IMG/VR virus record: IMGVR_UViG_3300048121_001678 | Span: 62,001 to 126,000 of that record | Length of the DNA: 64,000 nt | Direction: 5' to 3' (one strand) | Shown: piece by piece, positions 5,714-40,102 of the stretch | Numbering within the stretch: the stretch's first letter is position 1 | How the letters are laid out: each line of letters opens with the position of its first letter | Notes under the pieces: model-generated | What the model was told of the DNA's origin: nothing | What the model saw: only the letters and a program-made list of their open reading frames with translations | The model's database searches: none | Position numbers and translations under genes: made by a program

Positions 5714-6538
5714 TTATATGTAATCAAACAATTCTGAACTATCGTTACGTAATTTACGAAGTGCTTTCTCCTTAATTTGTCTTACTCTTTCTTTAGTTAA
5801 GTTAAAGTCTGTACCGATATCTTCAAGTGTACGTGCTGTACCTGATATACCATAATAGTCTTGAATAATATGTTTCTCACGTTCGTCCAATACGTTCATT
5901 ATTTCTAACATCTTATTCTTTAACAAACTTTTTGTACAAAATGACTCATCAGGTTGAACTGCATCCATGTTTTGAATTAAATCAACTAAGGTGTCACCTT
6001 CTTCATTTATATTCATATCCAAATCAATAACCTTTGGTAACCTACTAAACTTATCATCCAAATCCTTATTGGTTTTTTGTGCTTCTTTCTTAGCACGATG
6101 TAAATCTTGTACCACATTAACTGGTAGACGAATGGTACGTGAGTTTTCGTTAAGCGATTGGATAATTGATTGCTTAATCCACCACACGGCATAACTAATA
6201 AAACGTAGTTTCTTTGTCCAATCAAAGTTTTTAATCGCTTTCATCAATCCTAAATTACCTTCAGCAATTAAATCACTCATTGGTAATCCTTGATTCTGAT
6301 ATTGTTTTGCAACTGTTATGACAAACCTTAAATTACCCTGAAGTAGTTCTTGGTGGATGGCATCCATCTCCAACTCTGTTGGGTTACCTGAACAAACCAT
6401 CTCTGATAGTTCTTTTTCTCTTTCAGGTGTCATCACCTTAATCTTTCTAATGTCTGAAAGATACATCTGTATCTCATCTTGGTTCAATGGTGAACTCATA
6501 GTTTTCTCTGTTTTATTTTTGTTTATATTCATTTGCAT
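5714..6538 (-). CDS. RNA polymerase sigma factor, RpoD/SigA (sigma70) family
   Basis: region 1.2 YLSDI; region 2 NLRFVITVAKQY, DLIAEGNLGL, RFISYAVWWIKQSI; region 4 TLEDIG..FNLTKERVRQIKEKALRKLR; start may be 6532 or 6499. Confidence 0.95.
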   Translation of the reverse strand: MQMNINKNKTEKTMSSPLNQDEIQMYLSDIRKIKVMTPEREKELSEMVCSGNPTELEMDAIHQELLQGNLRFVITVAKQYQNQGLPMSDLIAEGNLGLMKAIKNFDWTKKLRFISYAVWWIKQSIIQSLNENSRTIRLPVNVVQDLHRAKKEAQKTNKDLDDKFSRLPKVIDLDMNINEEGDTLVDLIQNMDAVQPDESFCTKSLLKNKMLEIMNVLDEREKHIIQDYYGISGTARTLEDIGTDFNLTKERVRQIKEKALRKLRNDSSELFDYI

Positions 6539-7862: not shown

Positions 7863-8588
7863 TTAGATAATTTCACAATTTATATCATTAATACCAAATT
7901 CCTTAGCAACCATCTCGATTCTTTTAATCTTAGTTACGTTAGAACCCCAAGTAGACATATATAACCCATTCTTCATCAAAACTCTATCATAAGGTTTGAT
8001 TGAGTCTCTGAAACTTTCAAAATCCTCTTTGAAGAACTGACCAAATGTTTCATTAACCTTTGTTTTTTCAATACCTTCAGTGATTTCGTTCATAACACCC
8101 ACATACGTTTCTTTAGCGGTACTATTCATATAAACTTTACTACCTAAGGTAACCTTAAGGTTTGTTGATTTAGCTCGACCGATAGTTTTCTTAACTACAC
8201 TCTTCTCCTCTTCAGTCAATGTCATATCATTATCAACACTGAAACCTAAATCAATTTCTTTAATGTCAAGGTATCCCACCATCTTATCAATTCTTTCATT
8301 GAAAGAGTCAATGTCTCCAACATTAAACCATTCAGTGGTAATATTTCTACGGTCATCGTATTCTTTAATCACTCGATAATCATCAAAACAGACGTGAAGG
8401 ATACCTTCCAACTTATTCATATCCTGAGTTTCAAATACTCTAATCATCAATACATCAAATGGTAGGTGAGTCGAATTAAGTTGAGTCTCACGAATCTTAT
8501 ATTGTTTTGACAATCCAATCTTGTGATAACCATTTACGAAGTTACCACCATGGTCAATAATTCTTGCAACATAAACATATCCTTCCAT
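7863..8588 (-). CDS. GIY-YIG/T5orf172-like nuclease domain protein
   Basis: GYVY...KIGLS...RETQLN...LEGILH...EWF. Confidence 0.8.
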   Translation of the reverse strand: MEGYVYVARIIDHGGNFVNGYHKIGLSKQYKIRETQLNSTHLPFDVLMIRVFETQDMNKLEGILHVCFDDYRVIKEYDDRRNITTEWFNVGDIDSFNERIDKMVGYLDIKEIDLGFSVDNDMTLTEEEKSVVKKTIGRAKSTNLKVTLGSKVYMNSTAKETYVGVMNEITEGIEKTKVNETFGQFFKEDFESFRDSIKPYDRVLMKNGLYMSTWGSNVTKIKRIEMVAKEFGINDINCEII

Positions 8589-8591
8589 ATC

Positions 8592-9191
8592 TTAATCTTT
8601 TAATCGTTCTCCTGTTTCTTTGATAGTGAATTGTGACATATTATTTGTACCACTACCACCTCTCTTACCGTTTACAAATTTAACAATTCCATTGTTATAA
8701 AGTTTGTTTGGAGTGTCAAAAGTTTCACCTTTGAAGTGTAATAATCCTTTTGTGTCTAATTTTACCTCATATTCTACACCCTTATACTTTCTGATTAGTA
8801 TAGTGTCCTGTCCTAATGATTCTGCCAATACCGAAAGTCTATTATCAACTTCAACAGAACTGTTTTCTTTCTCTTGCTCCATATCGAAGTGTTCCGCTTC
8901 GTATGCGTTCATAAAGTTGATGAATTCACCAGTCAATGTGTCTTCGTCATCTTTGAACCATTCTCCGTGGGTTCTACGACTATCTAAGATGGAATGTAAC
9001 ATCTTCTCCACCTTATTCATGTTATCGACCTTAAAGACAGTCACAACTTTGTAACCAACAGGTGACTTTGTTCTATTAAGTTGATTTTCTCTCTGTACAG
9101 GATTAATAGATAAACCAATTTTTTTGTCATTGATATCCATCTGTCTTCCCATAACATCGTATAATTCTCCTAAGTAAATATATCCCTCCAT
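8592..9191 (-). CDS. GIY-YIG/T5orf172-like nuclease domain protein
   Basis: GYIY...KIGLS..P..RENQLN...VEKMLH...R..GEWF. Confidence 0.8.
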   Translation of the reverse strand: MEGYIYLGELYDVMGRQMDINDKKIGLSINPVQRENQLNRTKSPVGYKVVTVFKVDNMNKVEKMLHSILDSRRTHGEWFKDDEDTLTGEFINFMNAYEAEHFDMEQEKENSSVEVDNRLSVLAESLGQDTILIRKYKGVEYEVKLDTKGLLHFKGETFDTPNKLYNNGIVKFVNGKRGGSGTNNMSQFTIKETGERLKD

Positions 9192-13306: not shown

Positions 13307-13632
13307 GATTCAAAATGGTCAACAATCGTATTGATTGCCCATACACCACCTGAAGCTAACATCCCATCAAAGAAGATTGCAGGTACTGTTGATAGACCCA
13401 TTTCATTACCCCAAATGGAGTAAATAAATGCACCCATAAAAAATCCTACCCACGTTGAACAACACATCATACAGGAAATAATTCCGTGAATAAAGTTGAA
13501 CAACGGTCCGATAACAGGGGTACTTGAGTTACCCATAGTCTCTACTGATGTACGTAATCCTTGAAATATGGAACCATATACAATTATCTGTGTCATTCCG
13601 TATGCGGCTACTAACCATGCTAATAATATCAT
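13303..13632 (-). CDS. membrane protein with CxxCxSxW motif (DUF1360-like)
   Basis: three hydrophobic segments; SCMMCCSTWVG. Confidence 0.65.
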   Translation of the reverse strand: MILLAWLVAAYGMTQIIVYGSIFQGLRTSVETMGNSSTPVIGPLFNFIHGIISCMMCCSTWVGFFMGAFIYSIWGNEMGLSTVPAIFFDGMLASGGVWAINTIVDHFES

Positions 13633-14495
13633 AATTTATTTTTTAAATTTGTTGATGCCAAAAATGTGGCGTTTTCTTTTTTAAACTCTTTATCTAATTC
13701 TAACATAATTTTTTCATATTGTGAAATAAAATTATCTTTTTCTCTAATTTTGTCTTTAAGCTTTTGAATAGTTTTTTGTAAACCTTTAAGTTTTTCAGGT
13801 GAACTATCACCCTTTATCTCTTTGATTACCTCCACTGGTACTTCTTTGATAATCTCGACTTCTTTGATGACTTCGACTTCCTTAACAACCTCTTTAGGTT
13901 TTTCCTCCAAAAGAATTTCCAACTCAGATAGTTGCTTCTCCAATTTTTTCTTTTCAGCATTTGTATTCTTTAGCTTCGTACTATATGTTTTATTTGACTT
14001 TTCCAACTTGGCAAGTTTTCCACCAAGTTCCTTTACCTGTTCGTCATCAGTAATATAAACCTCTTTGGTGACCACCTTTTCGATAGGTTTTTCTACCTCA
14101 ATAATCTTCTCAACTTCTTTAATTACCTCCACAGGTTTTTCAACCTCCACGATAACCTCTTTCTCGACCACCTTTTCGACAATCTTTTCAACAGGTACCT
14201 CTTTGGTAATAACCCTCTCAACCTCTTTGATAACCTCTACGGGGACTTCTATCTCGACAACCTTCTCTACCACCTTTTCAACAGGAACCTCCACACGGAC
14301 TTCTTTAACCACTTCTTTCTCAATGACCTTAACTCCATCGGCGTTTAACATCCCATACTTTTCAATCTGATAACCTTGGGCAAAACATTCTTTTGTGAAC
14401 TCATCAATGTTGAGTTCATTCAACTTACAAAACGCTTTAAGGTCCTTAAGTTCAGAGGACGAAAAATTAATAGTTGGTGAGTTGCTCTGTGCCAT
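13629..14495 (-). CDS. V/E/K/P repeat and coiled-coil protein
   Basis: tandem EVPVEK(V/I)VEK-type repeats plus heptad regions. Confidence 0.75.
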   Translation of the reverse strand: MAQSNSPTINFSSSELKDLKAFCKLNELNIDEFTKECFAQGYQIEKYGMLNADGVKVIEKEVVKEVRVEVPVEKVVEKVVEIEVPVEVIKEVERVITKEVPVEKIVEKVVEKEVIVEVEKPVEVIKEVEKIIEVEKPIEKVVTKEVYITDDEQVKELGGKLAKLEKSNKTYSTKLKNTNAEKKKLEKQLSELEILLEEKPKEVVKEVEVIKEVEIIKEVPVEVIKEIKGDSSPEKLKGLQKTIQKLKDKIREKDNFISQYEKIMLELDKEFKKENATFLASTNLKNKL

Positions 14496-15255
14496 TTTCT
14501 AAATCTTCTATATCTGTAATCTTAAAACTTAAGAATGGACGTGGGTTTGATAAATCAACAAACGAATACTTCTCATTCTCTACATCATAAACACCAAAAC
14601 CGTGTTTAGTTACTGATTCACCAAAGTTTTGTTGTATCGTTGAACCAACCATATACGCCTTTTTCTTATTTGGTATATCAATCACCTGACGTTTATGGAT
14701 ATCACCACATAACACAACATCTAACCCTTTAAAGTTTTCAATCTCATATGCATGGTCTCCAAAGTCGAAACCAGTATCTGTTGTTAGTCCCTGAATCGGG
14801 TCGTGGAATAACCCAATCTTATACCCTTCAGCATCAGAGATGTCGGGTTTGATGTTACCCTGAAACTGTGAATACACACACCAACTTATATTATTATCCT
14901 CATAAACCCCTCGGTCTCTGTAGTATACAATCTCAGAGTTTTTCAATGAATCAATAATAGGTGTCAGCGCATCCAAACGATTAAGATTGTTATTAAGGAA
15001 GTCATGGTTACCAGGAATAAGGACTGTCTTCGCAATCTTTGTACATTCTGTCAATGTCCATGCAACTATTTCAATAAGTTCAGGTGTCATCTGATTCTTA
15101 CTGTGAACCAAATCACCAGTGAAAACAATACGGTCAGGGGTAATCTCTTTAAACTTATCTAACATCTCTGTCAGAATCTGTCTATATAAATCGTGGTCCT
15201 TAAATAACCTTATATGAAGGTCTGAAAAATGTACAATCTTTTTTATCATAAACAA
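14467..15255 (-). CDS. Mre11/SbcD (gp47-like) metallophosphoesterase nuclease
   Basis: SDLH, GDLVH, GNHD, GDIH, GS..QQNFGE motifs. Confidence 0.9.
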   Translation of the reverse strand: MFMIKKIVHFSDLHIRLFKDHDLYRQILTEMLDKFKEITPDRIVFTGDLVHSKNQMTPELIEIVAWTLTECTKIAKTVLIPGNHDFLNNNLNRLDALTPIIDSLKNSEIVYYRDRGVYEDNNISWCVYSQFQGNIKPDISDAEGYKIGLFHDPIQGLTTDTGFDFGDHAYEIENFKGLDVVLCGDIHKRQVIDIPNKKKAYMVGSTIQQNFGESVTKHGFGVYDVENEKYSFVDLSNPRPFLSFKITDIEDLENGTEQLTNY

Positions 15256-16130
15256 CTAAAATATCTATCCCCTCTATCACATAGGAATGTTACTACTATA
15301 CCATCAGGATTATTCTTTTCAATCCATCTTTCTGAAGCCAAAATATTAGAACCTGCAGATATACCAACAAATATACCATGTTCCTTTGCTAATCTCTTAG
15401 ACCTTTTCTTTGCATCTTCAGTTGAAACCGTCATAACCTCATCGACTCTATTCATATCAACCAAAAACTTTGAGCCGTCTCCAATACCTTGTATACCATG
15501 TAACCCTGGCTCACCACCACTCATCACTGGTGATTCTTCAGGTTCAACAGCAACTATTTTTACTATCGGCATATAGTCTTTAATTTTCAATCCGGCACCC
15601 ATTAGTGTACCACCTGTCCCTGTACCTGTAACAAAAGCATATATAGGGAGATACTCTTCAGTGTGATAATGAATGTCACTTAATATCTCCTTAGCCGTGG
15701 TTTCTTCATGTGATTTTATGTTTAATGGATTATTAAATTGGTCACAGTTAAACCACCCATTTTCCTTCGCTAATTTATCTCTAAGATTAATAGCGGTATC
15801 AAACTCACCCGCTGGTACCTCAATAAGTTCAGCGCCATAATACTCCATAGTTTTCTTTCTTTCTTCTGACATATTAGACGGCATCACAATCACACAATGA
15901 TACCCTCTTTCTGCCGCCAACCAAGCGAATGACACACCCATATTACCTGATGTCGCCTCAATAATCGTATCCCCTTTTTTTAAAATTCCTCTATTTTCCG
16001 CATCATTTATAATATAAGATGCTGGTCTGTCTTTTATTGAACCTGTTGGATTGAATACCTCCGCCTTCGCATATAATTTTTCACTTAACTTAATAAGTGG
16101 TGTATTTCCTATTTTATCTGATAATCTCAT
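15246..16130 (-). CDS. cysK: cysteine synthase (CysK/CysM family, PLP-dependent)
   Basis: IGNTPL, NPTGSIKDR (PLP Lys), EATSGN, GTGGT, HGIQGIG, DRGDRY. Confidence 0.9.
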   Translation of the reverse strand: MRLSDKIGNTPLIKLSEKLYAKAEVFNPTGSIKDRPASYIINDAENRGILKKGDTIIEATSGNMGVSFAWLAAERGYHCVIVMPSNMSEERKKTMEYYGAELIEVPAGEFDTAINLRDKLAKENGWFNCDQFNNPLNIKSHEETTAKEILSDIHYHTEEYLPIYAFVTGTGTGGTLMGAGLKIKDYMPIVKIVAVEPEESPVMSGGEPGLHGIQGIGDGSKFLVDMNRVDEVMTVSTEDAKKRSKRLAKEHGIFVGISAGSNILASERWIEKNNPDGIVVTFLCDRGDRYFSCL

Positions 16131-16772: not shown

Positions 16773-17411
16773 TTATCTTTTTAATTGGCAGAATGATACA
16801 ATAATGTATCTCTGACCTGTTAATACGGGTAAACCCCCGTGACGATGAGTTATTTGACCTGGATGTACCGATATATAACCTTTTTCACCTTTGAGTGATG
16901 TTTTTTGGTTTGGAAAATACGTACCACCACCAGTAAAATCTTCAGTATTTAATGTAACCACAACAGTTATTTGACTCGCATCGTGGTGTAAACCTAAATG
17001 ATATTGTGCATATGGGTGGTATCTCGCAATAAAGTTTTCCGAATGTAAATTCACCCATTCAGGTTCTTCTAATTTAAATAAATGTGCTGACATAGGCCAC
17101 ACATACTCCTCCAGTATCGATTGGTAAGTATCATGTAATCCCAAGGTTTCTAATACCATATCAGTTGTTGGATAATTCTCATGTCTATCAACGGTCCAAC
17201 AGTTACAGGCCTCCGCTTCTTGAACTATATAATCACAAAATAAATCTGTGAAACAAGGAATGGTATAGATATTAGGTAACTCTTCCTGTACATATAAATC
17301 CCAATTACCTGTTAGTAATTCAGGTCGTAAAAACTTCTCTTTCCACCCATCAGGGTCAGTAAAATAAGTATATAACTCAGGGTGTATTTTATTGGTTTTA
17401 ATATCTTCCAT
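16773..17411 (-). CDS. 2OG-Fe(II) dioxygenase resembling the PLOD lysyl-hydroxylase domain
   Basis: HHDAS, GGGT.F, HPGQITHRHGGLPV..G.RYIIVSF; N-terminal HPELY..F.DP..WKEKF. Confidence 0.85.
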   Translation of the reverse strand: MEDIKTNKIHPELYTYFTDPDGWKEKFLRPELLTGNWDLYVQEELPNIYTIPCFTDLFCDYIVQEAEACNCWTVDRHENYPTTDMVLETLGLHDTYQSILEEYVWPMSAHLFKLEEPEWVNLHSENFIARYHPYAQYHLGLHHDASQITVVVTLNTEDFTGGGTYFPNQKTSLKGEKGYISVHPGQITHRHGGLPVLTGQRYIIVSFCQLKR

Positions 17412-17562
17412 TTTCTTCTCCGTATTCTCTTGCTAATCTTAGACCCCATCCAATCATTAACCCACCAGCAAATGATGACCATAACCATGGATACATACAT
17501 AACCACATCCCTATAATAGCGAATATGCCTGAGTGTCCGTATTTAGTTATTTTTATTTTCAT
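17398..17562 (-). CDS. small two-TM membrane protein (54 aa), not in ORF track
   Basis: manual translation MKIKITKYGHSGIFAIIGMWLCMYPWLWSSFAGGLMIGWGLRLAREYGEENGRY*; short overlaps with both oxygenase genes. Confidence 0.55.
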   Translation of the reverse strand: MKIKITKYGHSGIFAIIGMWLCMYPWLWSSFAGGLMIGWGLRLAREYGEENGRY

Positions 17563-18154
17563 TACAATAATTAATCATATATTTCACATTATTATCTCTA
17601 ACCATTTTAACACCGTATCTGTGAGTTACTTGACCAGGAAAAATATATAAGTGTCCCTGTTTTGGTTTTATAACACAATCATACTTTTCAAAGTATAACT
17701 CACCACCATTATCTACATTCTTATCAAATTTTATTAATTTAGTTATATTAACAAAATCATGATGGAGTCTAATATCATCACCTTTTTCAAATGTTAGTAA
17801 CTCACTCTTGACATTCATCTCTCTAAAACCTCTACCTGATACGGACCAATAGTGATTCATCATTTCAAAACCATATTCCTCAATAACATCATAATAATCT
17901 TGATAGAATGAATGTTCATTAAATTCATACGACTTTAATCGTGTCCCCCATTTATTAGTTACCTGTACCTCTTCATTCTCAATATTTTCTAAGAATTTAT
18001 CACAGAACTCTTCAGTGAAAAAAGGAATTTCTAACACGTCAGTGCATGGGTTTCCTATCATTAAGTCCCATTCTTTGGATAATGCTTCCTTTCTCATGCA
18101 AAGAGCTTTCCATCGGTTAACGTTAGTAAAGTCAAATATTTCAGGGTATTTCAT
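17543..18154 (-). CDS. divergent PLOD-like 2OG-Fe(II) oxygenase paralog
   Basis: PCTDV...P.FTEEFCD, HHD, GGELYF, FPGQVTHRYG. Confidence 0.75.
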   Translation of the reverse strand: MKYPEIFDFTNVNRWKALCMRKEALSKEWDLMIGNPCTDVLEIPFFTEEFCDKFLENIENEEVQVTNKWGTRLKSYEFNEHSFYQDYYDVIEEYGFEMMNHYWSVSGRGFREMNVKSELLTFEKGDDIRLHHDFVNITKLIKFDKNVDNGGELYFEKYDCVIKPKQGHLYIFPGQVTHRYGVKMVRDNNVKYMINYCNENKNN

Positions 18155-22883: not shown

Positions 22884-24269
22884 TTATGGTCCAACATTAA
22901 CACTCGCCGAAACAGAATTACTAACAAGTACATTTCCACAGTTACTTGTGCTCAATACCGGATTTATTATTTGTACAGTATGATTATCATCTCCGAAAGC
23001 AGGACAATCATTTATCACCGATGGATTACTATTTTGAACTCCAAATGTATTTAAACCTGTTATCGTACCACCTGAAAGTGTTACACTATATGTTTTAGAT
23101 ATACCACTAAATATCGTACCACCACCCATTAATTGTGTGCCATTACATAATCTAGTATTTGTCTGTGATGTGATAACTTCATTACCATTGGTATTAATCA
23201 CCGCATTTCCATTAGTAGTAACACTATAATTTCTATTTAACTGTATTTGTTGTTGAGAATTATAGTTGTTCGTGAAGTTATTCGTAATTAATATGTCCGC
23301 AGTTATTGAAACACCCACAGGAAGTGCAGGTGATACAGATAGTGTCCATCCCACTGACTTTGTATTGTTACTCGAAGACGAAGTTACTGTATTGATACTC
23401 GAACTTAATACTAAATTATATGTGGTCGGTGCTGGCCCTGCAAGTATATTATACCCTCTTATGACGATAAGACCTGTCGTGTCTGTAATATGAACACTAC
23501 CGATACCTGCAGGTAATCCAGTAAATGTTGGTGATGATTGATATGTTAATCCACCATCAATAGAATAACTATAAGGTGGTACACCTGCCCACGCAGTCAC
23601 TGTTATTGTACCATCATTTGAATTAGCACAGGTCTCCATTGTTTTAGATACACTGGCATTTAACGCAACAGTTTCACAAGTACCCGTTGTCATAATCCAT
23701 GTATTACTTGTTCCCAATTCAGTCCATAAACCTTGTGGAATACTAATGTTAGATTGTAGAACAATGTTACCAGGAGTATATCCACTGATTTCCCAACGTG
23801 GTGGTGTATTAGTATTATTATATACAACATCATAAGTTGAACCTGTCCATGACGGTTTACCATTTACAATACCCTTATACCCAAACGCATATTGAGTATT
23901 CGGTGCTTGATATTTAGTCAAACATAATTCAGATGGATATGAAGGAGCCGGTGATGGTGTTGGTGTCGGAGTTGGACTCGATGTTGGAGTTGGTGTCACC
24001 GCATTTACAATACATGTTGTAGACCCACTGTAATCACCATAATTATCAATTACTGTCGCAGTATACGTACCGCTGGCTAAATTTGTTAATGTAGTTACAC
24101 CTACATCACCTGTTGACCAATTTATTGTATAAGGTGGTGTCCCCCCTGTGATAAATAAGGTCATAGTGCCCCCATAACCACTATTGTTGGCATCTGTTGT
24201 TGTACACGACACCCCTAATGGGAGAACGGTAAAAACATCACAGTTATTTGTAGGTATAAGATTACTCAT
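22884..24269 (-). CDS. SprB-repeat protein with short TP linker, putative virion adhesin
   Basis: GGTPPYTINWSTG..L.NL.SGTY...V.D and GVPPYSYSIDGG repeats. Confidence 0.7.
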   Translation of the reverse strand: MSNLIPTNNCDVFTVLPLGVSCTTTDANNSGYGGTMTLFITGGTPPYTINWSTGDVGVTTLTNLASGTYTATVIDNYGDYSGSTTCIVNAVTPTPTSSPTPTPTPSPAPSYPSELCLTKYQAPNTQYAFGYKGIVNGKPSWTGSTYDVVYNNTNTPPRWEISGYTPGNIVLQSNISIPQGLWTELGTSNTWIMTTGTCETVALNASVSKTMETCANSNDGTITVTAWAGVPPYSYSIDGGLTYQSSPTFTGLPAGIGSVHITDTTGLIVIRGYNILAGPAPTTYNLVLSSSINTVTSSSSNNTKSVGWTLSVSPALPVGVSITADILITNNFTNNYNSQQQIQLNRNYSVTTNGNAVINTNGNEVITSQTNTRLCNGTQLMGGGTIFSGISKTYSVTLSGGTITGLNTFGVQNSNPSVINDCPAFGDDNHTVQIINPVLSTSNCGNVLVSNSVSASVNVGP

Positions 24270-27221: not shown

Positions 27222-30200
27222 TTAACAGCAGTTATTACATATTGTAGTTAAATTATATGTTATCGGATTATAAAGTGCCGGTATCACAACCGTATTGTCC
27301 TGAGCACATATTGTAATTGTTGTCGGTACATTTATTATTACACCACTTACCTGTCTCTCTAAACCACATAAAGTATCATCACATTCCGTATAGTAGTACT
27401 CAAAGGTCTGTGAATTACTAAACCCTGTAACCGTTAATTCATATTGTGAACAGAATAAAACTGACGGTGTAGAACTTGGTGTTGGCGTATAAGTTGAAGT
27501 TACAGATGGAGTAACTGTATTTGTAGGTGTAACAGAGGATGTAAGTGTTTGTGTTGGTGTCGGAGTCGATGTTGCATCCAATGATGAAGATGGTGTGACT
27601 GACGCTGTCGGTGTTGGTGTCGATGTTGGAGTCGCACCTGGTGTTGAAGTTACCGTCGGTGTCGCTGTTAATGTAGGTGTAACGGATGGTGTCGGCGTAT
27701 TAGATGACGTCACAGTTACCGTTTGTGTCGGAGTGATTGTGGATGTCGGAGTTGATGTAGGAGTTCCACCAGGTGTCTCTGATGGTGTCACAGTCTGTGT
27801 TACGGTAACAGTTGGCGTAAATGTTGGAGTGATACTTGATGTGATTGATGGAGTCACCGTTAAAGTAGGTGTTACCGATGCCGTTGTTGATGGTGTCAAT
27901 GTCGGAGTAACAGATGGTGTTGCCGATGCAGTTGGAGTAACTGTTGAAGTCTGTGTTGGTGTATTTGTCTGTGTAACATCCGGTGTTTCAGAAGGTGTAA
28001 CTGTTTGTGTAGGTGTTGAAGTTGGAGTCTCAGAAGCAGTAACCGTTGGAGTAACTGAACCTGTAGGTGTATTGGTATTTGTAACCGTTGGTGTTACCGA
28101 AGCAGTCGTAGATGGTGTAGGTGTAATAGATGCCGTTGGGGTAACTGACGATGTAGGAGTTATCGTTTGTGTCGGAGTATTAGATGGTGTTACCGTAACT
28201 GTTTGAGTCGGTGTATTAGTAGGTGTTGAACCTGGCGTTTCAGATGGTGTCACTGTTTGTGTCTGTGTAACCGTCGGAGTAATACTTGCCGTCAATGTTG
28301 GAGTTACTGACGCAGTTGGTGTAATAGTATTAGTAACCGTTGGAGTAACTGATGAAGTCACCGATGGTGTAGGAGTTACTGATGAGGTTGGTGTAACCGT
28401 AGATGTTGGAGTGACAGAAGATGTTGGGGTTACTGTTGACGTTTGAGTGACAGTCTGAGTTGGTGTAGATGTTGGTGTAACACCTGGTGTTTCAGAAGGA
28501 GTTACCGTTTGTGTTTGAGTAACTGTTGGAGTCACACTCGAAGTTAATGTTGGAGTTACTGAAGCAGTTGGAGTAACAGATGAAGTTACCGTAGCAGTTA
28601 CCGATGGTGTTGGCGTATTTGACGTTGTTGGTGTTATTGTCGCAGTTGGTGTCACGGTTGAAGTCTGAGTAACCGTTTGTGTCGGAGTATTAGTTGGGGT
28701 TACCCCTGGTGTTTCAGAAGGAGTGACAGTCAATGTCGGTGTCTGTGTTGGTGTTTCACTCGCAGTCACTGTAGGTGTTACAGATGCCGTTGGGGTAACT
28801 GTAGAAGTAATAGTAGCAGTAACCGATGGAGTCGGTGTAACTGATGATGTTGGTGTCACAGATGCAGTTGGGGTAACTGTTGAAGTCTGAGTAACTGTTT
28901 GTGTTGGGGTGTTTGTAGGTGTAGATACAGGAGTCGATGATGGTGTTACCGTTTGTGTTTGAGTTACTGTCGGAGTTACACTCGAGGTAATAGTTGGTGT
29001 TACTGATTCGGTCGGTGTAACTGATGCCGTCACAGTAGCAGTAACTGAAGGTGTTGGTGTATTTGATGTAGTTGGTGTAACTGAAGCTGTTGGTGTTACC
29101 GATGATGTTGGAGTTACTGAAGCCGTTTGTGTAACCGTTTGAGTTGGTGTATTAGTAGGTGTTGAACCTGGCGTTTCAGAAGGCGTTACTGTCTGTGTTT
29201 GAGTTATTGTCGGTGTGATAGTAGCCGTTAATGTCGGAGTCACTGACGCAGTTGGTGTTACTGTCGATGTTACCGTCGCAGTCACCGATGGTGTTGGAGT
29301 ATTTGACGTTGTTGGTGTAACTGAAGCTGTTGGTGTGATTGAAGCAGTCGGAGTGACAGAACTTGTAGGGGTATTAGTTGGTGTTGAGACTGGCGTCTCT
29401 GAAGGAGTAACTGTTTGTGTTTGAGTTACCGTTGGTGTGTTACTCGCGGTCAATGTTGGTGTAACCGACGCTGTCGGAGTTACCGTTGAAGTTATAGTCG
29501 CGGTTACAGATGGTGTCGGCGTATTAGAAGTTGTAGGAGTAACCGATGCCGTTGGAGTAACAGACGATGTTGGAGTAACAGACGCAGTTTGTGTTACCGT
29601 TTGAGTCGGTGTTGATGTTGGAGTTACCCCTGGTGTTTCAGAAGGAGTAACCGTTTGAGTCTGGGTTACCGTTGGTGTAATAGTCGCCGTAACCGTTGGC
29701 GTAATAGAAGCTGTCGGAGTAACTGATGATGTAACCGTCGCAGTAACTGATGGAGTTGGTGTGTTTGATGTAGTAGGTGTGACTGACGCAGTTGGAGTAA
29801 CAGATGCGGTTGGTGTAACAGAACTTGTTGGTGTATTAGTTGGTGTCGATATTGGAGTTTCAGAAGGAGTTACCGTCTGAGTTTGAGTTACGGTCGGTGT
29901 ATTACTTGCTGTCAATGTTGGCGTAACTGACGCAGTTGGTGTGACTGAAGCAGTATTTGTTGGAGTTACACTTGCCGTTGGCGTAACTGAAGATGTTGGG
30001 GTTACCGAAGCCGTTGGTGTATATGTTGGAGTGACTGACGGTGTTGGAGTGACCGATGCAGTTGGTGTAGGTGTTGGTGTCGGAGCAATGAAGATAACAT
30101 CAACAGGACATATACAAGCCGAAGTATCAACATTAGTAACACCCCAACTACTAATCACCTCACCTGGAGGAAGAATAGAGTTGAAGTTATACTCAACCTG

Positions 30201-33200
30201 ATGGTCACCTTGTGGCCATGTTCTTGTACCTGAATATGTAAATCCTGAACTACCAACCATAAACCCATCAACCTCATAATCACATAAGGACTCAGCAGGT
30301 ATGGTAAACCCAGTATCTTTCCAAAGATTCAATCTAATCTTATCACCCTGAACAACATAACCTGTTAAATATTGTGTCGTTTGAGAACATGTTGTAGATG
30401 GAGTAACTGTTTGAGTTGGTGTAATTGTTTGAGTTTGAGTGACTGTCGGAGTAACAGAAGCCGTAGGAGTAACAGAGGCAGTTGGAGTCACAGATGCGGT
30501 AACTGTTTGAGTAGGAGTAACAGACGCAGTTGGTGTAACCGATGATGTTGGAGTATTAGAAGGTGTTACCGTAACTGTTTGAGTCGGTGTATTAGTAGGT
30601 GTTGAACCTGGCGTTTCAGAAGCAGTTACAGTCTGAGTAGGAGTAAATGTCGGAGTTACGGTTGCCGTTACCGTTGGTGTAATACTTGCCGTTGGTGTTA
30701 CACTCGCAGTTATCGTTGCCGTTACTGACGGTGTCACTGTTTGAGTCGGAGTAACTGAAGCAGTTGGTGTAACCGATGAAGTTGGAGTAACTGAAGCAGT
30801 CACCGTTTGAGTTGGGGTGATTGATGCGGTTGGTGTCACACTCGCAGTTGGCGTAACTGATGAAGTAGGTGTATTTGTTTGTGTTACCTCAGGTGTTTCA
30901 GATGGAGTGACCGTTTGAGTAGGTGTATTAGTTGGCGTTTCACTTGCTGTCAATGTTGGAGTAACAGACGCAGTTGGTGTTACAGATGCCGTCACAGTAG
31001 CGGTAACCGAAGGTGTTGGAGTATTTGTTGGTGTTTCTGTCGGTGTTGGGGTAACTGAAGACGTTGGTGTTACTGATGATGTAGGAGTGACAGATGCCGT
31101 TACCGTCTGTGTTGGAGTGATAGTTGCCGTTTGAGTAACAGTTGAAGTCGGAGTATTAGTTGGCGTACTTACAGGTGTTGACGAAGCAGTAACTGTTTGT
31201 GTAGGGGTAAATGTCGGTGTTACAGTTGCAGTGACTGTTGGTGTGATTGAAGCGGTTGGCGTAACCGACGCAGTTACTGTCGCAGTAACAGAAGGTGTTG
31301 GAGTATTAGACGCAGTTACTGTTTGTGTTGGTGTTACAGAAGCCGTTGGGGTGTTAGTTGGTGTGGTAGTATTAGATGGTGTGACAGTATTTGTTGGAGT
31401 TAGACTAGCGGTCGGAGTAACTGACGATGTTGGTGTATTTGTTGGAGTTGATACAGGTGTTTCTGAAGGCGTTACCGTTTGTGTTTGAGTAACTGTTGGT
31501 GTCACACTAGCAGTCACTGTTGGAGTAATAGACGCAGTTGGTGTAACCGATGATGTAACAGTCGCCGTTACTGTTTGCGTAGGAGTATTTGTTGGTGTTT
31601 CAGTCGGTGTTGGAGTTACCGATGATGTAGGAGTAACTGAAGCCGTCGGTGTTACTGAAGCAGTAACTGTTTGAGTCGGTGTCAATGTCGCAGTTGGAGT
31701 AACTGATGATGTTGGTGTATTTGTCGGAGTAACGGCTGGTGTTGATGAAGCTGTTACGGTCTGTGTCGGAGTAAATGTTGGAGTCACAGTTGCAGTAACA
31801 GTTGGCGTGATACTCGCAGTTGGTGTGTATGTTGGTGTTACAGTCGCAGTAATAGATGGCGTTACAGAAGCAGTTGGCGTAACTGATGCCGTTGGAGTGA
31901 CCGAAGATGTTGGGGTCACAGAAGCAGTCACAGTTTGAGTTGGTGTAACTGTATTAGTAGGTGTTACACTTGCAGTCGGAGTTACAGATGCAGTTGGAGT
32001 ATTTGTAGGAGTAACCGCAGCCGTTTGAGTCGGAGTATGTGTCGGTGTTACTGTAGATGTTGCAGTTACAGATGGTGTCGGAGTAACAGAAGATGTCGGA
32101 GTTACCGACGCAGTTGGAGTATTAGTAGGTGTTACACTTGCAGTCGGAGTTACAGATGCAGTTGGCGTATTTGTTGGTGTCACCGTATTCGATGGAGTAA
32201 CAGTATTTGTTGGAGTAACGGATGCCGTTGGCGTAACCGAAGCTGTCGGTGTATTTGTTGGTGTAACTTGAGCAGTCTGAGTAGGAGTATTAGTTGGTGT
32301 GACGGTAGACGTCGCAGTCACCGATGGTGTAGGAGTCACAGATGAAGTAGGGGTTACCGAAGCGGTTGGAGTGTTCGTAGGGGTAACACTTGCAGTTGGT
32401 GTTACCGATGATGTCGGAGTATTCGTAGGAGTAACACTCGAAGTTGGAGTAACTGAAGCAGTTGGCGTATTTGTTGGAGTTACAGTGTTTGACGGAGTAA
32501 CTGTATTTGTTGGAGTTACACTCGCAGTCGGAGTAACCGATGCTGTAGGTGTATTAGTTGGAGTTACCGCGGCCGTTTGTGATGGTGTCACAGATGCAGT
32601 TGGAGTATATGTTGGGGTTACTGTGGCCGTTCTTGTCGGAGTATTAGACGGAGTGACGGTATTTGTCGGTGTATTGGTTGGTGTAACTGTATTAGATGGG
32701 GTAACCGACGATGTTGGTGTATTTGTTGGAGTAACGGTATTAGACGGTGTAACAGTATTAGTAGGTGTATTCGTAGGCGTCTCACTCGCTGTCGGTGTTA
32801 TAGTTCTAGTTGGTGTATTAGAAGGCGTAACTGTATTCGTAGGAGTATAAGTAGGAGTAACAGTATTCGATGGCGTAACCGATGCAGTAACAGTTGCAGT
32901 CGGTGTTATAGTTCGAGTAGGTGTATTTGTTGGAGTAACGGTATTAGACGGTGTAACCGTATTCGTAGGGGTAAAGGTCGGAGTAACAGTATTCGAAGGC
33001 GTGACTGAAGCAGTTACCGTTGCCGTTGGAGTTATTGTCCTCGTTGGGGTATTTGTTGGGGTAGCGGTGTTAGAAGGGGTGACTGACGGAGTAGCCGTAG
33101 TTGAAGGGGTTAATGTAGCAGTTTTAGTCTGAGTAATAGTTGCGGTAATAGTAGGGGTCACCGAAGCAGTAGGTGTATATGTTGGAGTTACAGTATTTGT

Positions 33201-34721
33201 AGGTGTATTTGTTGGCGTAACAGTATTAGATGGTGTAACTGACGCAGTAGGTGTGACTGTCCTAGTTGGTGTATTAGAAGGCGTAACCGTATTCGTAGGA
33301 GTATAAGTAGGAGTGACAGTATTTGTTGGAGTGACCGTAGGTGTCGGCGTAGCGGTTCTAGTCGGCGTCCTTGTAGGACTTACCGAAATACTTGGAGTGA
33401 CTGAAGGAGTAACCGTCGCAGTTCTAGTCGGAGTCCTCGTAGGACTTACAGAAATACTTGGTGTAACCGTAGCGGTTCTCGTAGGTGTTCTGGTTGGACT
33501 TACAGAAATCGAAGGTGTAACCGTCGGAGTTGCCGGTGGAGTTCGAGATGGAGTAACACTCGAAGTTGGTGTTACAGCTGGAGTTCGAGACGGGGTCTTC
33601 GTCGGAGGAGGAGTACTCGTTGGAGTCCTTGTTGGAGTTCTTGTTGGAGTTCTTGTTGGGGTTGGTGGTATCGGGGTAGTTGACGGAGTTGGAGTTGGAG
33701 TTACAGGTTCATCAGAACAACATTCTTCACATGTCTCGTATACACTAGCCGAACAGTCAACAACCGCTTCACAATCAGGTACAACACCCTCAATAAAATA
33801 ACAACATCCGTCACAACTATCTAATTTAACAACTTGACCAGCATTCGGACATGGATTTAAATTAGTGACTTTAACAAACTGAGCATGATATTGATAATTA
33901 CACTCACATTCGGGTTCTATAAAGTCACACCTAACTAAATAAAGACAACACGGTTCACCTAAGTTAGTCACATCATAACCCTGATTAGGTTCCATACCAG
34001 GTTCATATGGTGTTGGCTCATTAGTATTACCCAAACCTAAACACTCATCACAACCATTTGGAAAAAGAGTATTAACTGAACCTATAAATGATATGTTAGC
34101 GGTAGGACAGTTTTCGGCACAACTTCCAACAGCGATTACTTCCCAACAAACATTTATATTATCAGAAAATGCGTCACCGACACTAAAATTATAAACATTT
34201 TGAATACAAGCGACTGATGTTTGCGTTAGACAGTCCCGAATACATGCATATCCAATATTATGAACAATATATCCGTTTAAAACATAATAACTTGGACCAC
34301 TAAGTGTTATGTTATATAAAGATTCTTCAGAGTATACAATTTCCTTACTAACAACAGGTTCATGAATGATGTCACCATCAACCATTTTAACCATATCATA
34401 TTCACCATCAACAACTAAATCTATTGTAGATATAAACTGATATCTATCATCATTTTTATGATACGCTAAGACATTTTCGTCTATAACACCTAATCCATTA
34501 ATTTGAAGATAGTTACCCTCATCATTATAGATGTCTGTAACCTCAGGTGATTGTATATTATCAACATTAAGAGTTAGTGATTCGATTTCACGGAAGTCAA
34601 TTCCTGCGATAATTTCAGGTATATCAAAAGAGTATACACTGTCACCTAATTGAACATCTTCAATGTTCTTTACGGCACCATTTGAAAGTAATACTTTTTG
34701 TCCTAATTTATAACCAGCCAT
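27222..34721 (-). CDS. giant mucin-like protein: N-terminal Hint domain, Cys-rich region, ~2000 aa Thr/Ser/Pro/Val repeats
   Basis: 2499 aa uninterrupted ORF; Hint ends YNITL....[11 protein letters not shown]; repeat tract interrupted once by a ~100 aa globular module; Cys-rich C-terminus. Confidence 0.85.
27480..33700 (-). repeat. degenerate coding tandem repeat, TP(T/S)x(S/T)V hexapeptide with higher-order units
   Basis: recurrent gttggNgtNac units on the plus strand; interrupted at about 30085-30390. Confidence 0.9.
34257..34721 (-). other. Hint (intein-like) domain, residues 1-155
   Basis: [27 protein letters not shown] matches block A without Cys1; terminal His-Asn. Confidence 0.75.
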
Positions 34722-34767: not shown

Positions 34768-37128
34768 CTAAGATTCCTTCCTTAAACTTCCATCATAATG
34801 GTCAAACCTATCATGTTCAGTTGGTGATAGTAATAAAATACCTGGTTTAATATTACCTATTATCGTTTCTTGAAACATATATGACATCCAAGTCTGCTCA
34901 TAAGGTCGAGCCCATTTCTCAGTTAAGAACATTTTTTCATTACCATATTTTGACACCACCTGTGGCCAATTACAATAATAAATTTCACCATGTGCAAATG
35001 GTATACCTTGGAAGCTGTCTATTTTTGTGATTTTAGTTTTTGGTGCATTAGGGTCTAATCCTTGGATAGGTAATAATGGTTTTTCAGGCCAATGCTGTTC
35101 TCTAATTTTTTGAGGTACGTTATACCAAGCCCATTGAACTGTATTGTCACCGTAAAACTCAGTATATGATAACTTTAAAAAGTCAAAGTTGTTTTTCTTA
35201 GCAATTTTAAGCGAATTTCTATATAGGTTTTTAACATATCTGTTAAAACCATTTTTATCTACCTCACCCTCTTTAGGATAAAAGAACATATCATCCTCAA
35301 AAAAGAAATAATAATCATATCCATTTTCTTCAGCGTGTTCTGCAACCCATTGTCTACCACCACAAATACCTAAATTATCTTTTTTAACGTGTTCAATATT
35401 ATATTCTTTACAAAGTTCAACATATTCTTCAGTTGTCGATAAATCCGTAGAGTTATCTAACATCACCCATTGTGGTTTAGTTACAAAGTCCTCATCATAT
35501 TGTTTCATAGATTGAATCAATGTCTTTACCTGATTTGGACTATTAAATGTAATCACATAAAGTGCAACATTATCAATATCTAAATCATTAGTAATAACAT
35601 CAAACTTTAACTCATTAAGTGGTTTATGTGTATCATTTTTAACGTCTTCAAAAAACTTACTAATTAATCCATTACCCTCAATTGGGAAATACTGATAGTT
35701 TTCAGGATATCTATACAGTAAAATAGTGAAAAGAGACTCTTCAGTACCCATATAGCCCGAATTAAGAGTGTTTTTCATTAAATTGTAGTACTCATTGTTA
35801 AAATCTGCAATAGATTCTACAGGACCACCAAAGAAACCACCACGACAAACTTTATTTACTTTAGTACTTGTCATTTCACAAATCTTATCATAATCGAATC
35901 CATGAATTTCTGTCTCCGTTTCATAAGGGAATGCGATGTAACTAATTTTGTCTATTTTTGTTAATTTATCCAATACTTTATCGTGTGTAAAGTATCCAGA
36001 ATGTACGGTATTGGTAATCCCCGCATCTAACCAAAATAAATGTGTTGAATTAAATTGGTCCATTATTTTAGCATCATGTAAAAGATATGGTTTAGACATA
36101 ACCAGTGGATTATACATGTCAAGTTTAGCCTGTGTTGACTCACCTAACCAACCAACCTGATTTATCCAATCAGGATTATTTCTAATAGTTTGTATTGAGT
36201 TGTAAAACTCACCTTTAAACCATTCTTGGTCACGTGTTATAAACATAGTATTATCTCTACTACGTCTTTCAAAAACAAACTCCTCTAATTCTGCATCACC
36301 AAATACTATAAGGTTATAAGGTATTTCCAAAAATTGAGAAAACTTCTCTAAATAATGTTCAAAACTTCTTGACCATCCCTCGGCTAATTCATCTCTTTTA
36401 ATGTTCCATAACCCAGTAACTATTGTAATTCCACTTTCATTCATATCTTCATATATCTCGTTATATATTTCTTTGATGATACCTACTATGTCTTCAGATT
36501 CTTTACCATAAACGTATCCGTTATCATCAAAAGTTTTTATTATTTGTTGTTTTTCTTCATCAGATAGACTTGACCACTCTAATCTAACTACTTTAGGTCT
36601 ATACTTTGAAAAATCAATCTGTTTAAATATTTCATAATCATGTCCTTCGGCATCAATTTTTATAACGTCAAATTCAACAATATTATGTTTTTCTAATAAC
36701 CTTTCAAAAGTAATACACGGTACCTTTACTCTAAGTCCATATTTTTCAACAGTATCTCTATCACCATCACTACCCAATCCATTTTTTGGTGGATATATTG
36801 CACTCATACCCATAAAACAAGTATGCATCTTACCTTCTTGTATCGCTGAAGGACTGATAGTAATCATTTCCACATCACCATTATATGTTGAGATTGCAGA
36901 GTTTTCATACTTATTTTCATCCCCAAAGTTTTTCTTTAATTTTTCAAAATAGTATGGAATTGGTTCCACATATAAACCTTTAAAATCATAAGCATTTGAA
37001 TACCCACTTAACTCATCAAATGTTTGACCATCCATAGCCCCAATATTAATGGTAAATAATCTATGACCTTTCTTACCTAAATGATGTAATATATCATTAA
37101 AATAATCTGTATTTTTTAACTGTATCAT
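34768..37128 (-). CDS. fusion of FkbM-family methyltransferase, HtrL/YibB-like domain and GT2-like glycosyltransferase
   Basis: IGAMDG, VEP, KIDAEGHD (FkbM); TIVTGLW, YNPLVMSK, FWLDAG (HtrL); DNST, NLGICGGR, FFEDD (GT-A); start at 37128 by TAATG overlap. Confidence 0.8.
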   Translation of the reverse strand: MIQLKNTDYFNDILHHLGKKGHRLFTINIGAMDGQTFDELSGYSNAYDFKGLYVEPIPYYFEKLKKNFGDENKYENSAISTYNGDVEMITISPSAIQEGKMHTCFMGMSAIYPPKNGLGSDGDRDTVEKYGLRVKVPCITFERLLEKHNIVEFDVIKIDAEGHDYEIFKQIDFSKYRPKVVRLEWSSLSDEEKQQIIKTFDDNGYVYGKESEDIVGIIKEIYNEIYEDMNESGITIVTGLWNIKRDELAEGWSRSFEHYLEKFSQFLEIPYNLIVFGDAELEEFVFERRSRDNTMFITRDQEWFKGEFYNSIQTIRNNPDWINQVGWLGESTQAKLDMYNPLVMSKPYLLHDAKIMDQFNSTHLFWLDAGITNTVHSGYFTHDKVLDKLTKIDKISYIAFPYETETEIHGFDYDKICEMTSTKVNKVCRGGFFGGPVESIADFNNEYYNLMKNTLNSGYMGTEESLFTILLYRYPENYQYFPIEGNGLISKFFEDVKNDTHKPLNELKFDVITNDLDIDNVALYVITFNSPNQVKTLIQSMKQYDEDFVTKPQWVMLDNSTDLSTTEEYVELCKEYNIEHVKKDNLGICGGRQWVAEHAEENGYDYYFFFEDDMFFYPKEGEVDKNGFNRYVKNLYRNSLKIAKKNNFDFLKLSYTEFYGDNTVQWAWYNVPQKIREQHWPEKPLLPIQGLDPNAPKTKITKIDSFQGIPFAHGEIYYCNWPQVVSKYGNEKMFLTEKWARPYEQTWMSYMFQETIIGNIKPGILLLSPTEHDRFDHYDGSLRKES

Positions 37129-37658
37129 TATTCTATTACTATAAAGTTCTTTTGCCAACCTTTATATTCCGTCCAAGTCTTACCCAAAATCTCTGCGGTT
37201 TCAACTGCAAAATTATATTCATCTTCTCTGTGTGTGTCATCCATAATAATTGGAACTGATGTATTCAATCTATCCCAGTATTTTGCAATATTATTTCTAG
37301 TCTTAACTTGGTCTAAATTTGGTGGTCCATCAACAATAATTAACGAATATTCTTCAGGTAAACTATTGAATACAACTTCAGAATTATACCATCCGTCCAC
37401 AATATCCGCTAAGATGTAATTAGCCTTTGGTGCCAAACGTGTAAATCTTTCTTGGTGTTCAATAGCATATACGTTATGATACCTACTCAGCTCCATAGTA
37501 CCACTACCACTACCAAACTCAATGATTGTCTCACCCTTTTCAATATTTTCATCAATCCAAGAATAACACTCCATAGATATTGCCCAACCATCAAGGTTAT
37601 TCATATTAACATCCAATTCCTTTAACTTAGGAAATATATAATTTAAATCTGTATTCAT
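37128..37658 (-). CDS. class I SAM-dependent methyltransferase
   Basis: IIEFGSGSGT, IIVDGPP, IMDDT.R. Confidence 0.75.
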   Translation of the reverse strand: MNTDLNYIFPKLKELDVNMNNLDGWAISMECYSWIDENIEKGETIIEFGSGSGTMELSRYHNVYAIEHQERFTRLAPKANYILADIVDGWYNSEVVFNSLPEEYSLIIVDGPPNLDQVKTRNNIAKYWDRLNTSVPIIMDDTHREDEYNFAVETAEILGKTWTEYKGWQKNFIVIE

Positions 37659-40101: not shown

Positions 40102-40102
40102 G

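Follow-up and report, generated by a model that had tools for sequence, protein, structure and literature searches.

A pair of lysyl hydroxylase-related genes in a marine jumbo phage

We analysed a stretch of 64,000 nucleotides, hereafter the window, that corresponds to bases 62001-126000 of IMG/VR virus record IMGVR_UViG_3300048121_001678. This 297,164-bp record (~99% complete, 34% GC) is a tailed bacteriophage, a marine jumbo phage: it encodes a sigma-70 factor, peptidoglycan amidases, a primase, a RuvC-like resolvase, an Mre11/Rad50 pair and tail proteins, and near-identical DNA recurs in the seawater and marine metagenomes of many separate studies. The window carries two neighbouring genes related to the lysyl hydroxylase (LH) domain of PLOD enzymes, ORF-A and, upstream of it, the divergent paralog ORF-B, which may together serve to modify collagen-like fibres of the same phage. 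An earlier note, made from the sequence of the window, had described tandem PLOD-like domains here. Both ORFs lie on the minus strand exactly where it had placed them (Table 1), as two separate genes divided by a spacer and not as domains of one protein.

ORF-A is a PLOD-type lysyl hydroxylase domain

A phmmer search of PDB sequences with ORF-A returned lysyl hydroxylases only, namely human LH3 (E 1.6e-29 over residues 6-208, 33% identity over the whole LH domain) and mimivirus L230 (E 4e-25). In Pfam, ORF-A matched the LH-associated OGFOD2-like domain (PF25238, the LH-specific N-terminal extension; 33.5 bits against a cut-off of 31) and 2OG-FeII_Oxy (PF03171). The AlphaFold2 (AF2) model of ORF-A (pLDDT 91.6), which has the DSBH fold, was matched by Foldseek to LH3 with a template modelling (TM) score of 0.86-0.89 and to L230 with a TM score of 0.82-0.89, a root-mean-square deviation of 1.8-2.0 Å and 30-31% identity. 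The next family was the PBCV-1 prolyl hydroxylase, at a TM score of 0.54.

All the motifs that had been quoted for this protein are present (HPELYTYFTDPDGWKEKF, ENYPTTD, NFIARY, HHDAS and HPGQITHRHGGLPVLTGQRYIIVSF), and the HxD...H triad and the Arg that binds 2-oxoglutarate (2OG) are borne out by the HMMER alignment to LH3; it is on such alignments, not on model coordinates, that the residue mapping of both ORFs rests. With the residue roles given in the LH3 structure paper for the Fe ligands, the 2OG pocket and the dimer positions (PMC6082870), the Fe ligands His667, Asp669 and His719 of LH3 correspond to H142, D144 and H191 of ORF-A, the 2OG-binding Arg729 to R201, the 2OG-pocket residues Tyr656 and Cys691 to Y131 and T164, the dimer knob Leu715 to I187, and the dimer pocket Phe639 to F112. 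The five catalytic positions (Y131, H142, D144, H191 and R201) are invariant in 85 close homologs and essentially so in ~130 diverse representatives. Across the ORF-A family the knob position is mostly hydrophobic and the position of Phe639 is aromatic in 34/34 sequences. At the second Fe site of LH3 (His595, Asp597, Asp611 and His613), ORF-A retains H77 and D84 and lacks the equivalents of Asp597 and His613. ORF-A has neither glycosyltransferase (GT) nor AC domains, so that the GT-AC-LH architecture of PLOD1-3 and L230 is absent. Its ratio of nonsynonymous to synonymous substitution rates (dN/dS) is 0.05-0.12. Sequence, fold and residues agree in identifying ORF-A as a PLOD-type LH, as the earlier note had it, and not as a generic or base-modifying 2OG oxygenase. 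ORF-A is almost certainly an LH-type protein hydroxylase.

Three giant collagen-like fibre proteins of the phage have abundant Y-position lysine

The window contains no collagen G-X-Y repeat, as had been remarked before. A search of the rest of the genome, which had been suggested as a check, revealed three giant collagen-like genes ~35-48 kb away from the LH pair and outside the window (Table 1). Each of their products contains a Pfam Collagen match (E 1e-54 to 4e-61) and has a Peptidase_S74 intramolecular-chaperone domain at its C-terminus, a combination that marks trimeric phage fibres. X-Lys-Gly is the established target of collagen LH enzymes. Across the 729 G-X-Y triplets of the three ORFs, Lys occupies the Y position 287 times (39%) and never the X position, and Pro is found 168 times at X and only 7 times at Y. 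The ratio of Lys to Arg at Y is 7.2, versus 2.2 in the rest of the proteome, and the usual Y residue of bacterial collagens is Thr (PMC8968730). This enrichment is suggestive of an LH substrate. Judging from its context, that is, from the 287 Y-position lysines and from the linkage to collagen genes described below, ORF-A likely hydroxylates Lys in X-Lys-Gly of collagenous sequence.

Several further modification genes were found in this genome. A 205-aa PKHD/PiuC-type 2OG oxygenase and a 489-aa GT17 glycosyltransferase adjoin the collagen genes (genome 27634-29776, outside the window; L087:3634-5776), and one possibility is that this oxygenase acts on X-position Pro. A separate GT25 gene lies at genome 236.4-237.2 kb, and the sole significant PDB match of its product is human ColGalT1 (E 2e-6). 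A fourth 2OG-FeII_Oxy_3 oxygenase of 199 aa is encoded at genome 284369-284968 on the minus strand. Other modification genes lie on the plus strand at genome 190136-192610 and 198320-200184, and comprise a GT2_5-GT4 fusion (824 aa) and GT1-like and GT2 genes.

Table 1. Coordinates of the LH gene pair, the collagen-like genes and the glycan-related genes of the phage
Feature	Location	Strand	Description
ORF-A	window 16773-17411	-	212 aa, stand-alone PLOD-type LH domain
ORF-B/ORF-A spacer	window 17412-17542	-	131 nt
ORF-B	window 17543-18154	-	203 aa, divergent paralog with predicted LH fold; upstream of ORF-A
Mucin-like protein	window 27222-34721	-	2499 aa; directly adjoins the glycan-tailoring cluster
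Glycan-tailoring cluster	window 34768-41371	-	FkbM/HtrL, carbamoyltransferase, GT60 and two further ORFs of no assigned family
Collagen-like ORF 1	genome 30629-34687	-	1352 aa
Collagen-like ORF 2	genome 34687-38634	-	1315 aa
Collagen-like ORF 3	genome 38818-43677	-	1619 aa

Relatives of ORF-A lie beside collagen-like genes in other uncultured phages

Relatives of ORF-A were found on 419 IMG/VR contigs. After dereplication at 95% LH identity, and counting only loci whose upstream flank reached 3.3 kb or more, a collagen-like ORF was located just upstream of the LH gene and on the same strand at 19 of 21 loci. Together, the collagen-like ORFs of those loci contain 4585 triplets; Lys occurs at Y in 834 of them and at X in 7, and Pro at Y in 58. 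In T4-like phages the module runs from the collagen gene or genes through a 200-aa PKHD-type oxygenase, a GT2 and a GT4-LH or GT4-GT25-LH fusion to the tail sheath genes. The oxygenase of this module is orthologous to the 205-aa protein encoded beside the collagen genes of the jumbo phage (39% identity, E 3e-48). Other relatives of ORF-A are GT25-LH and GT25-GT_PLOD-LH fusions, and in a tree of 172 LH domains the ORF-A clade (support 100) is nested among GT-fused phage enzymes. Furthermore, all five related jumbo-phage fragments that carry the ORF-B/ORF-A pair have several giant collagen ORFs ~40 kb away.

The active site of ORF-B, a conserved paralog, is altered throughout its family

ORF-B is recognizably related to LH3 (phmmer E 9.5e-7) and to ORF-A (E 1.2e-20, 24% identity). 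Its AF2 model (pLDDT 85.4) was matched by Foldseek to LH3 and L230 with TM scores of 0.80-0.84, versus ~0.6 for prolyl 4-hydroxylases (P4Hs) and PHD enzymes, and on the strength of this model ORF-B has an LH-type fold. ORF-B contains the motifs LHHDF, THRYG and VKY; an altered active site had been proposed from its Tyr at the distal His and its Lys in place of Arg. Relative to LH3, ORF-B keeps H131 and D133 and carries Y180 in place of His719, K191 in place of Arg729 and F122 in place of Tyr656. The replacement of the distal His holds throughout family B, with Tyr in 36/36 members, and 5/36 carry Arg in place of the first HxD His. The Tyr656 equivalent is Phe, Leu or Met, and that of Cys691 is hydrophobic. 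The other proposed change, Arg to Lys, is confined to this genome and its close clade: allowing for an alignment shift of one residue, 28 of 30 members have either Arg or Lys at the Arg729 position, and we dropped this substitution as a trait of the whole family.

Family B has 24 invariant columns, among them H101, W103, R129, H132, D133, K157, H178, Y180 and G181, and E152 is nearly invariant. The dN/dS of ORF-B is 0.06-0.10, a purifying selection as strong as that on ORF-A; for the pair L009/L012, in which dS is unsaturated, the values are 0.068 for ORF-B and 0.050 for ORF-A. The selection and the invariant columns rule out that ORF-B is a decaying pseudogene. ORF-B lacks the canonical set of Fe(II) triad and 2OG-binding Arg and Tyr, and on the basis of these residue losses it is predicted to be inactive. 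With residue losses that run through the family, purifying selection and linkage to an active-type paralog, ORF-B fits the description of a conserved pseudoenzyme.

We also considered that ORF-B might be an active oxygenase with a non-canonical site, in which for example H131/D133 and H178 would bind the metal and Lys or Arg would bind 2OG, and which would introduce a second modification into the fibres or act on another substrate, with or without ORF-A. The invariance of H132, D133, H178, R129 and K157, the near-invariance of E152, the basic residue found at the Arg729 position in 28/30 members and the low dN/dS are all consistent with such an enzyme. Against it stand the Tyr found at the distal-His position in every member, the Arg that replaces the HxD His in 5/36, the hydrophobic residue at the Tyr656 position in all of them, and the near-complete invariance of the same five catalytic positions in ~130 diverse LH relatives. 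Moreover, mutation of LH catalytic residues abolishes LH activity (PMC6082870). We consider an active ORF-B unlikely. That it is a non-catalytic partner of ORF-A has, in our judgement, an even chance of being correct.

ORF-B is linked to ORF-A in a tandem arrangement that may be older than its degeneration

At each of the 13 loci examined (L007-L012 and L089-L095, several of them near-identical), ORF-B directly precedes an A-type gene. In orthologous pairs on other contigs the spacer ranges from ~130 nt to an 11-nt overlap of the two genes, the latter in some of these 13 loci. A promoter and terminator scan of the ORF-A/ORF-B region gave no signal above shuffled expectation. Contigs from RNA libraries that are near-identical to the window cover parts of ORF-A, ORF-B and the spacer, one of them spanning 17282-17651; they hint weakly at expression of the pair, as DNA carry-over is possible and strand and level cannot be read from contigs.

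The positions that form the dimer interface of LH3 are kept in ORF-B: W103, which is invariant, stands at Phe639, I137 at Phe673, and Ile or Val occupies the Leu715 position in 30/30 members. Complex prediction for ORF-A with ORF-B returned a median score of 0.57 (0.48, 0.81 and 0.57 in the individual runs), and the best of three controls scored 0.00. Contacts agreed between runs by at least 79%, and the pLDDT of the partner was at least 89. Of 80 solved complexes, 58 reached the mark set for this score, as did 2 of 110 mismatched pairs. Scores of 0.60 or less with the mark reached occurred for only 7 of the 80 solved complexes but for both passing mismatches. The idea that the two proteins form a heterodimer, which the earlier note had raised from the dimerisation of PLOD LH domains, is thus favoured by linkage and by the interface positions, and weakly by the predicted complex. 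An ORF-A/ORF-B heterodimer is plausible. To our knowledge, a heterodimer of an active and a degenerate subunit would be an arrangement without precedent among lysyl hydroxylases.

In the LH tree, family B forms a single clade (support 99) with a long stem and, together with the protein P0259, falls outside a clade of 108 tips that holds microbial and phage LH domains. This position speaks against a recent tandem duplication of ORF-A into ORF-B, with the proviso that long-branch attraction is possible. P0259 belongs to the ORF-B lineage and is the upstream one of two LH paralogs that lie in tandem, both apparently intact, at L110:1357-2612 (a 268-kb contig of NCBI GCA_947501375.1). It keeps the HHD...HxH...R residues and is followed by an A-like gene. 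Because an intact member of the ORF-B lineage already precedes an A-like gene there, the tandem arrangement looks older than the degeneration of ORF-B, and the L110 pair may be a snapshot of the state before that degeneration.

A glycan-tailoring cluster in the window adjoins a mucin-like protein

The window also contains a glycan-tailoring cluster (Table 1). It encodes an FkbM methyltransferase fused to an HtrL-like domain (796 aa), a carbamoyltransferase (523 aa) and a GlcNAc-transferase of the GT60 family (PF11397, the Gnt1 family; 422 aa, E 4e-68). PF11397 GT60 is kept in three of five related jumbo-phage fragments. The mucin-like protein that the cluster directly adjoins has a globular N-terminus, a Cys-rich C-terminus and hundreds of repeats of the 'TASVTPT' type; it is 33% Thr and 14% Pro, and Lys-Gly is absent from it. 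These repeats account for the local high GC (~45%) and the strong GC skew. The 2499-aa protein is a likelier target of the GT60 cluster than hydroxylysine or hydroxyproline, and we judged it unlikely that the cluster consumes either hydroxylated residue.

This bears on the possibility that ORF-A hydroxylates a phage or host protein other than collagen, for example a Thr/Pro-rich structural protein, a ribosomal protein or a translation factor, in the manner of bacterial P4H on EF-Tu or of PhyA-Gnt1 on Skp1. The GT60 cluster itself, with its partial conservation in related fragments, the position of the LH pair in a replication and repair neighbourhood away from the collagen genes, and a gating loop in ORF-A that differs from that of LH3 could all be read in this sense. 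However, ORF-A is far closer to LH3 and L230 than to P4H and PHD enzymes (TM 0.86-0.89 versus at most 0.54), its clade is embedded among GT-LH fusions whose genes directly adjoin collagen genes, and O-glycosylation of the Thr/Pro-rich protein next to the cluster needs no hydroxylation. A non-collagen target is, in our view, quite improbable. The earlier note had likewise drawn a link of the PhyA-Gnt1 kind between the ORF pair and the glycosylation genes of the window. With the mucin-like protein as the natural target of the cluster, this analogy is not favoured: a GT60 is present, but the oxygenases encoded by ORF-A and ORF-B are of the LH type and not of the PHD type, and LH genes elsewhere are linked to collagens.

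Genomic neighbourhood of the pair

The neighbours of ORF-A and ORF-B are replication and repair genes (primase, exonuclease, RuvC-like resolvase and Mre11/Rad50). Together with weak PHROG matches to families labelled 'DNA endonuclease', they might suggest that the pair modifies nucleic acid, through base hydroxylation or repair of the AlkB or TET/JBP kind, but no AlkB, TET or JBP match appears in the Pfam, PDB sequence or Foldseek lists, the best PHROG match is the 2OG-Fe(II) oxygenase phrog_61, sequence and fold are LH-specific, and the relatives are fused to glycosyltransferases and lie beside collagen genes, which makes this reading very improbable indeed.

Among the same replication and repair genes, a CysK-like PLP-dependent enzyme (PALP, E 1e-67) is encoded at window 15246-16130 on the minus strand and occupies the same place in related contigs (L089). 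In a nucleotide search of this region against GenBank phages, the CysK part gave the sole match, to a 635-kb uncultured phage. A 288-aa protein encoded at window 13629-14495 (minus strand) consists mostly of V/E/K/P repeats such as 'VEKVVEKEV...EVIKEVE' and has no family match. Two adjacent genes with T5orf172/MUG113 domains, likely homing-endonuclease-like, and a phage sigma-70 factor (regions 1.2, 2 and 4) are found at window 7863-9191 and 5714-6538, also on the minus strand. A protein with SprB repeats is encoded at window 22884-24269. Outside the window, genome 45482-50708 (L088:1482-6708) encodes a 376-aa protein resembling glutamine synthetase and a complete TonB-dependent receptor of 852 aa with plug and barrel. 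The SprB repeats, the TonB-dependent receptor and the 34% GC content hint at a marine member of the Bacteroidota as host.

Discussion

From homology, fold, residue conservation, selection, gene linkage and substrate motif, we infer the following course of events. ORF-A would be a functional Fe(II)/2OG-dependent lysyl 5-hydroxylase of the PLOD/L230 type that modifies Y-position lysines, in X-Lys-Gly, of the three collagen-like fibres of the phage, within the infected cell and ahead of chain trimerisation. The resulting hydroxylysines would probably then be O-glycosylated by phage glycosyltransferases, with the GT25 of the ColGalT family as the best candidate. ORF-B would be an old LH paralog that lost the distal His and the 2OG-binding Tyr and kept the fold and the dimer-interface positions; presumably made together with ORF-A, it would most likely pair with it as a non-catalytic or differently acting subunit. 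We assign a probability of roughly 0.62 to the reading as a whole, in which ORF-A hydroxylates Lys of the phage fibres and ORF-B is its non-canonical partner. That the collagen-like fibres are the substrates of ORF-A is, taken by itself, probable.

Several observations weigh against this interpretation. The LH pair sits ~35-48 kb from the collagen genes, among genes for replication and repair. The gating loop of ORF-A is 9 residues shorter than that of LH3 (positions 590-610) and has lost Asp597 and Arg599, and LH3 His613 is Val in ORF-A and Val, Leu or Ile across the family. Lys at Y is generally favoured in collagens, and an AT-rich genome favours Lys. A GT25 gene was found in one of the five related jumbo fragments, which at 32-60% completeness are uninformative on this point. 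As to the partner, ORF-A occurs in a sister lineage at the same syntenic position with no ORF-B beside it, so that ORF-B is not required for ORF-A. The score of the predicted complex may reflect memory of solved LH homodimers. The Arg or Lys kept at the Arg729 position in 28/30 members and the invariant H178 mean that ORF-B could still bind 2OG and metal. Finally, hydroxylysine is not known from biochemistry or proteomics of any phage.

A close known parallel is the collagen lysyl hydroxylase/glucosyltransferase L230 of Acanthamoeba polyphaga mimivirus (PDB 6AX6, 6AX7 and 9NEV), which like ORF-A is a virus-encoded LH with the same fold and the same Fe and 2OG residues. Mimivirus, like this phage, also encodes its own collagen-like proteins and glycosyltransferases. 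Unlike ORF-A, which is a stand-alone protein of 212 aa from a bacteriophage, L230 has ~890 aa, includes fused GT domains and comes from a virus of eukaryotes. The phage LH gene is accompanied by a degenerate paralog, and the phage glycosyltransferases are encoded apart from it. Human LH3 (PLOD3), as well as PLOD1/2, shares with ORF-A Tyr656, His667, Asp669, His719 and Arg729, the hydrophobic residue at Leu715 and the aromatic one at Phe639. LH3 works with ColGalT1, a GT25, and the phage likewise encodes a GT25 that matches ColGalT1. ORF-A differs from LH3 in having no GT or AC domains, a shorter gating loop and Thr in place of Cys691, and it would act in the bacterial cytoplasm and not in the endoplasmic reticulum.

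The GT4-GT25-LH and GT4-LH fusions of uncultured T4-like phages (P0137-P0151, L013-L086) are the closest relatives of ORF-A, with ~50% identity, a sister position in the tree and the same catalytic residues. They lie directly downstream of collagen-like genes with Lys at Y and of a PKHD-type oxygenase gene, the latter also present in this phage. In these phages the LH is fused to GT4 or GT25, not to GT_PLOD, and has no family-B paralog, whereas the jumbo phage has dispersed, separate genes and ORF-B. The viral collagen prolyl 4-hydroxylase of PBCV-1 (vCPH) and bacterial P4Hs are, like ORF-A, 2OG oxygenases, and theirs is an activity on proline-rich or collagen-like repeats. They belong to another subfamily (TM 0.54) and target Pro, whereas the phage collagens are nearly devoid of Pro at Y.

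In protein searches of 50,697 GenBank phage records, ORF-A had two matches at 29-32% identity and no close homolog, and ORF-B had none. Full-text searches for phage lysyl hydroxylase, hydroxylysine in phage fibres and procollagen-lysine found no prior description in a literature from which most subscription journals were absent. Prokaryotic and phage collagen-like proteins are regarded as essentially unmodified, and among viruses, hydroxylated and glycosylated collagen is cited for mimivirus alone (PMC8968730). Other bacterial dioxygenase families were predicted by Iyer and colleagues (2010) to modify collagen-like proteins. The novelty lies not in the enzyme class, which is known, but in its occurrence in a bacteriophage, in an LH that stands alone, in the conserved degenerate partner and in the tie to Lys-rich fibres.

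Across hundreds of uncultured phage contigs, LH is tied to Lys-rich collagen-like fibres and to glycosyltransferases of the ColGalT family by synteny, fusion and co-occurrence. Hydroxylysine, which prokaryotic collagens are believed to lack, may be present in phage fibres. More tentatively, and at somewhat less than even odds, many aquatic uncultured phages would have collagen fibres in which Y-position lysines are hydroxylated and then glycosylated by PLOD-type enzymes in the bacterial cytoplasm, with a heterodimer of active and degenerate LH in the jumbo clade. Genes for 2OG oxygenases, including the so-called P4H genes, are reported to be common among the auxiliary metabolic genes of phages and to have a cryptic function (2022 paper, PMC9301287). 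If the link to fibres is real, such genes would move from host metabolism to virion maturation. The compact LH enzymes of ~210 aa, bacterially expressible and with natural substrates, would then be useful for recombinant collagen engineering and for structural work on LH, and the conserved degenerate paralog would offer a natural way to ask why LH enzymes must dimerise to be active. The same link would also bear on a microbial origin of the collagen-modifying enzymes of animals.

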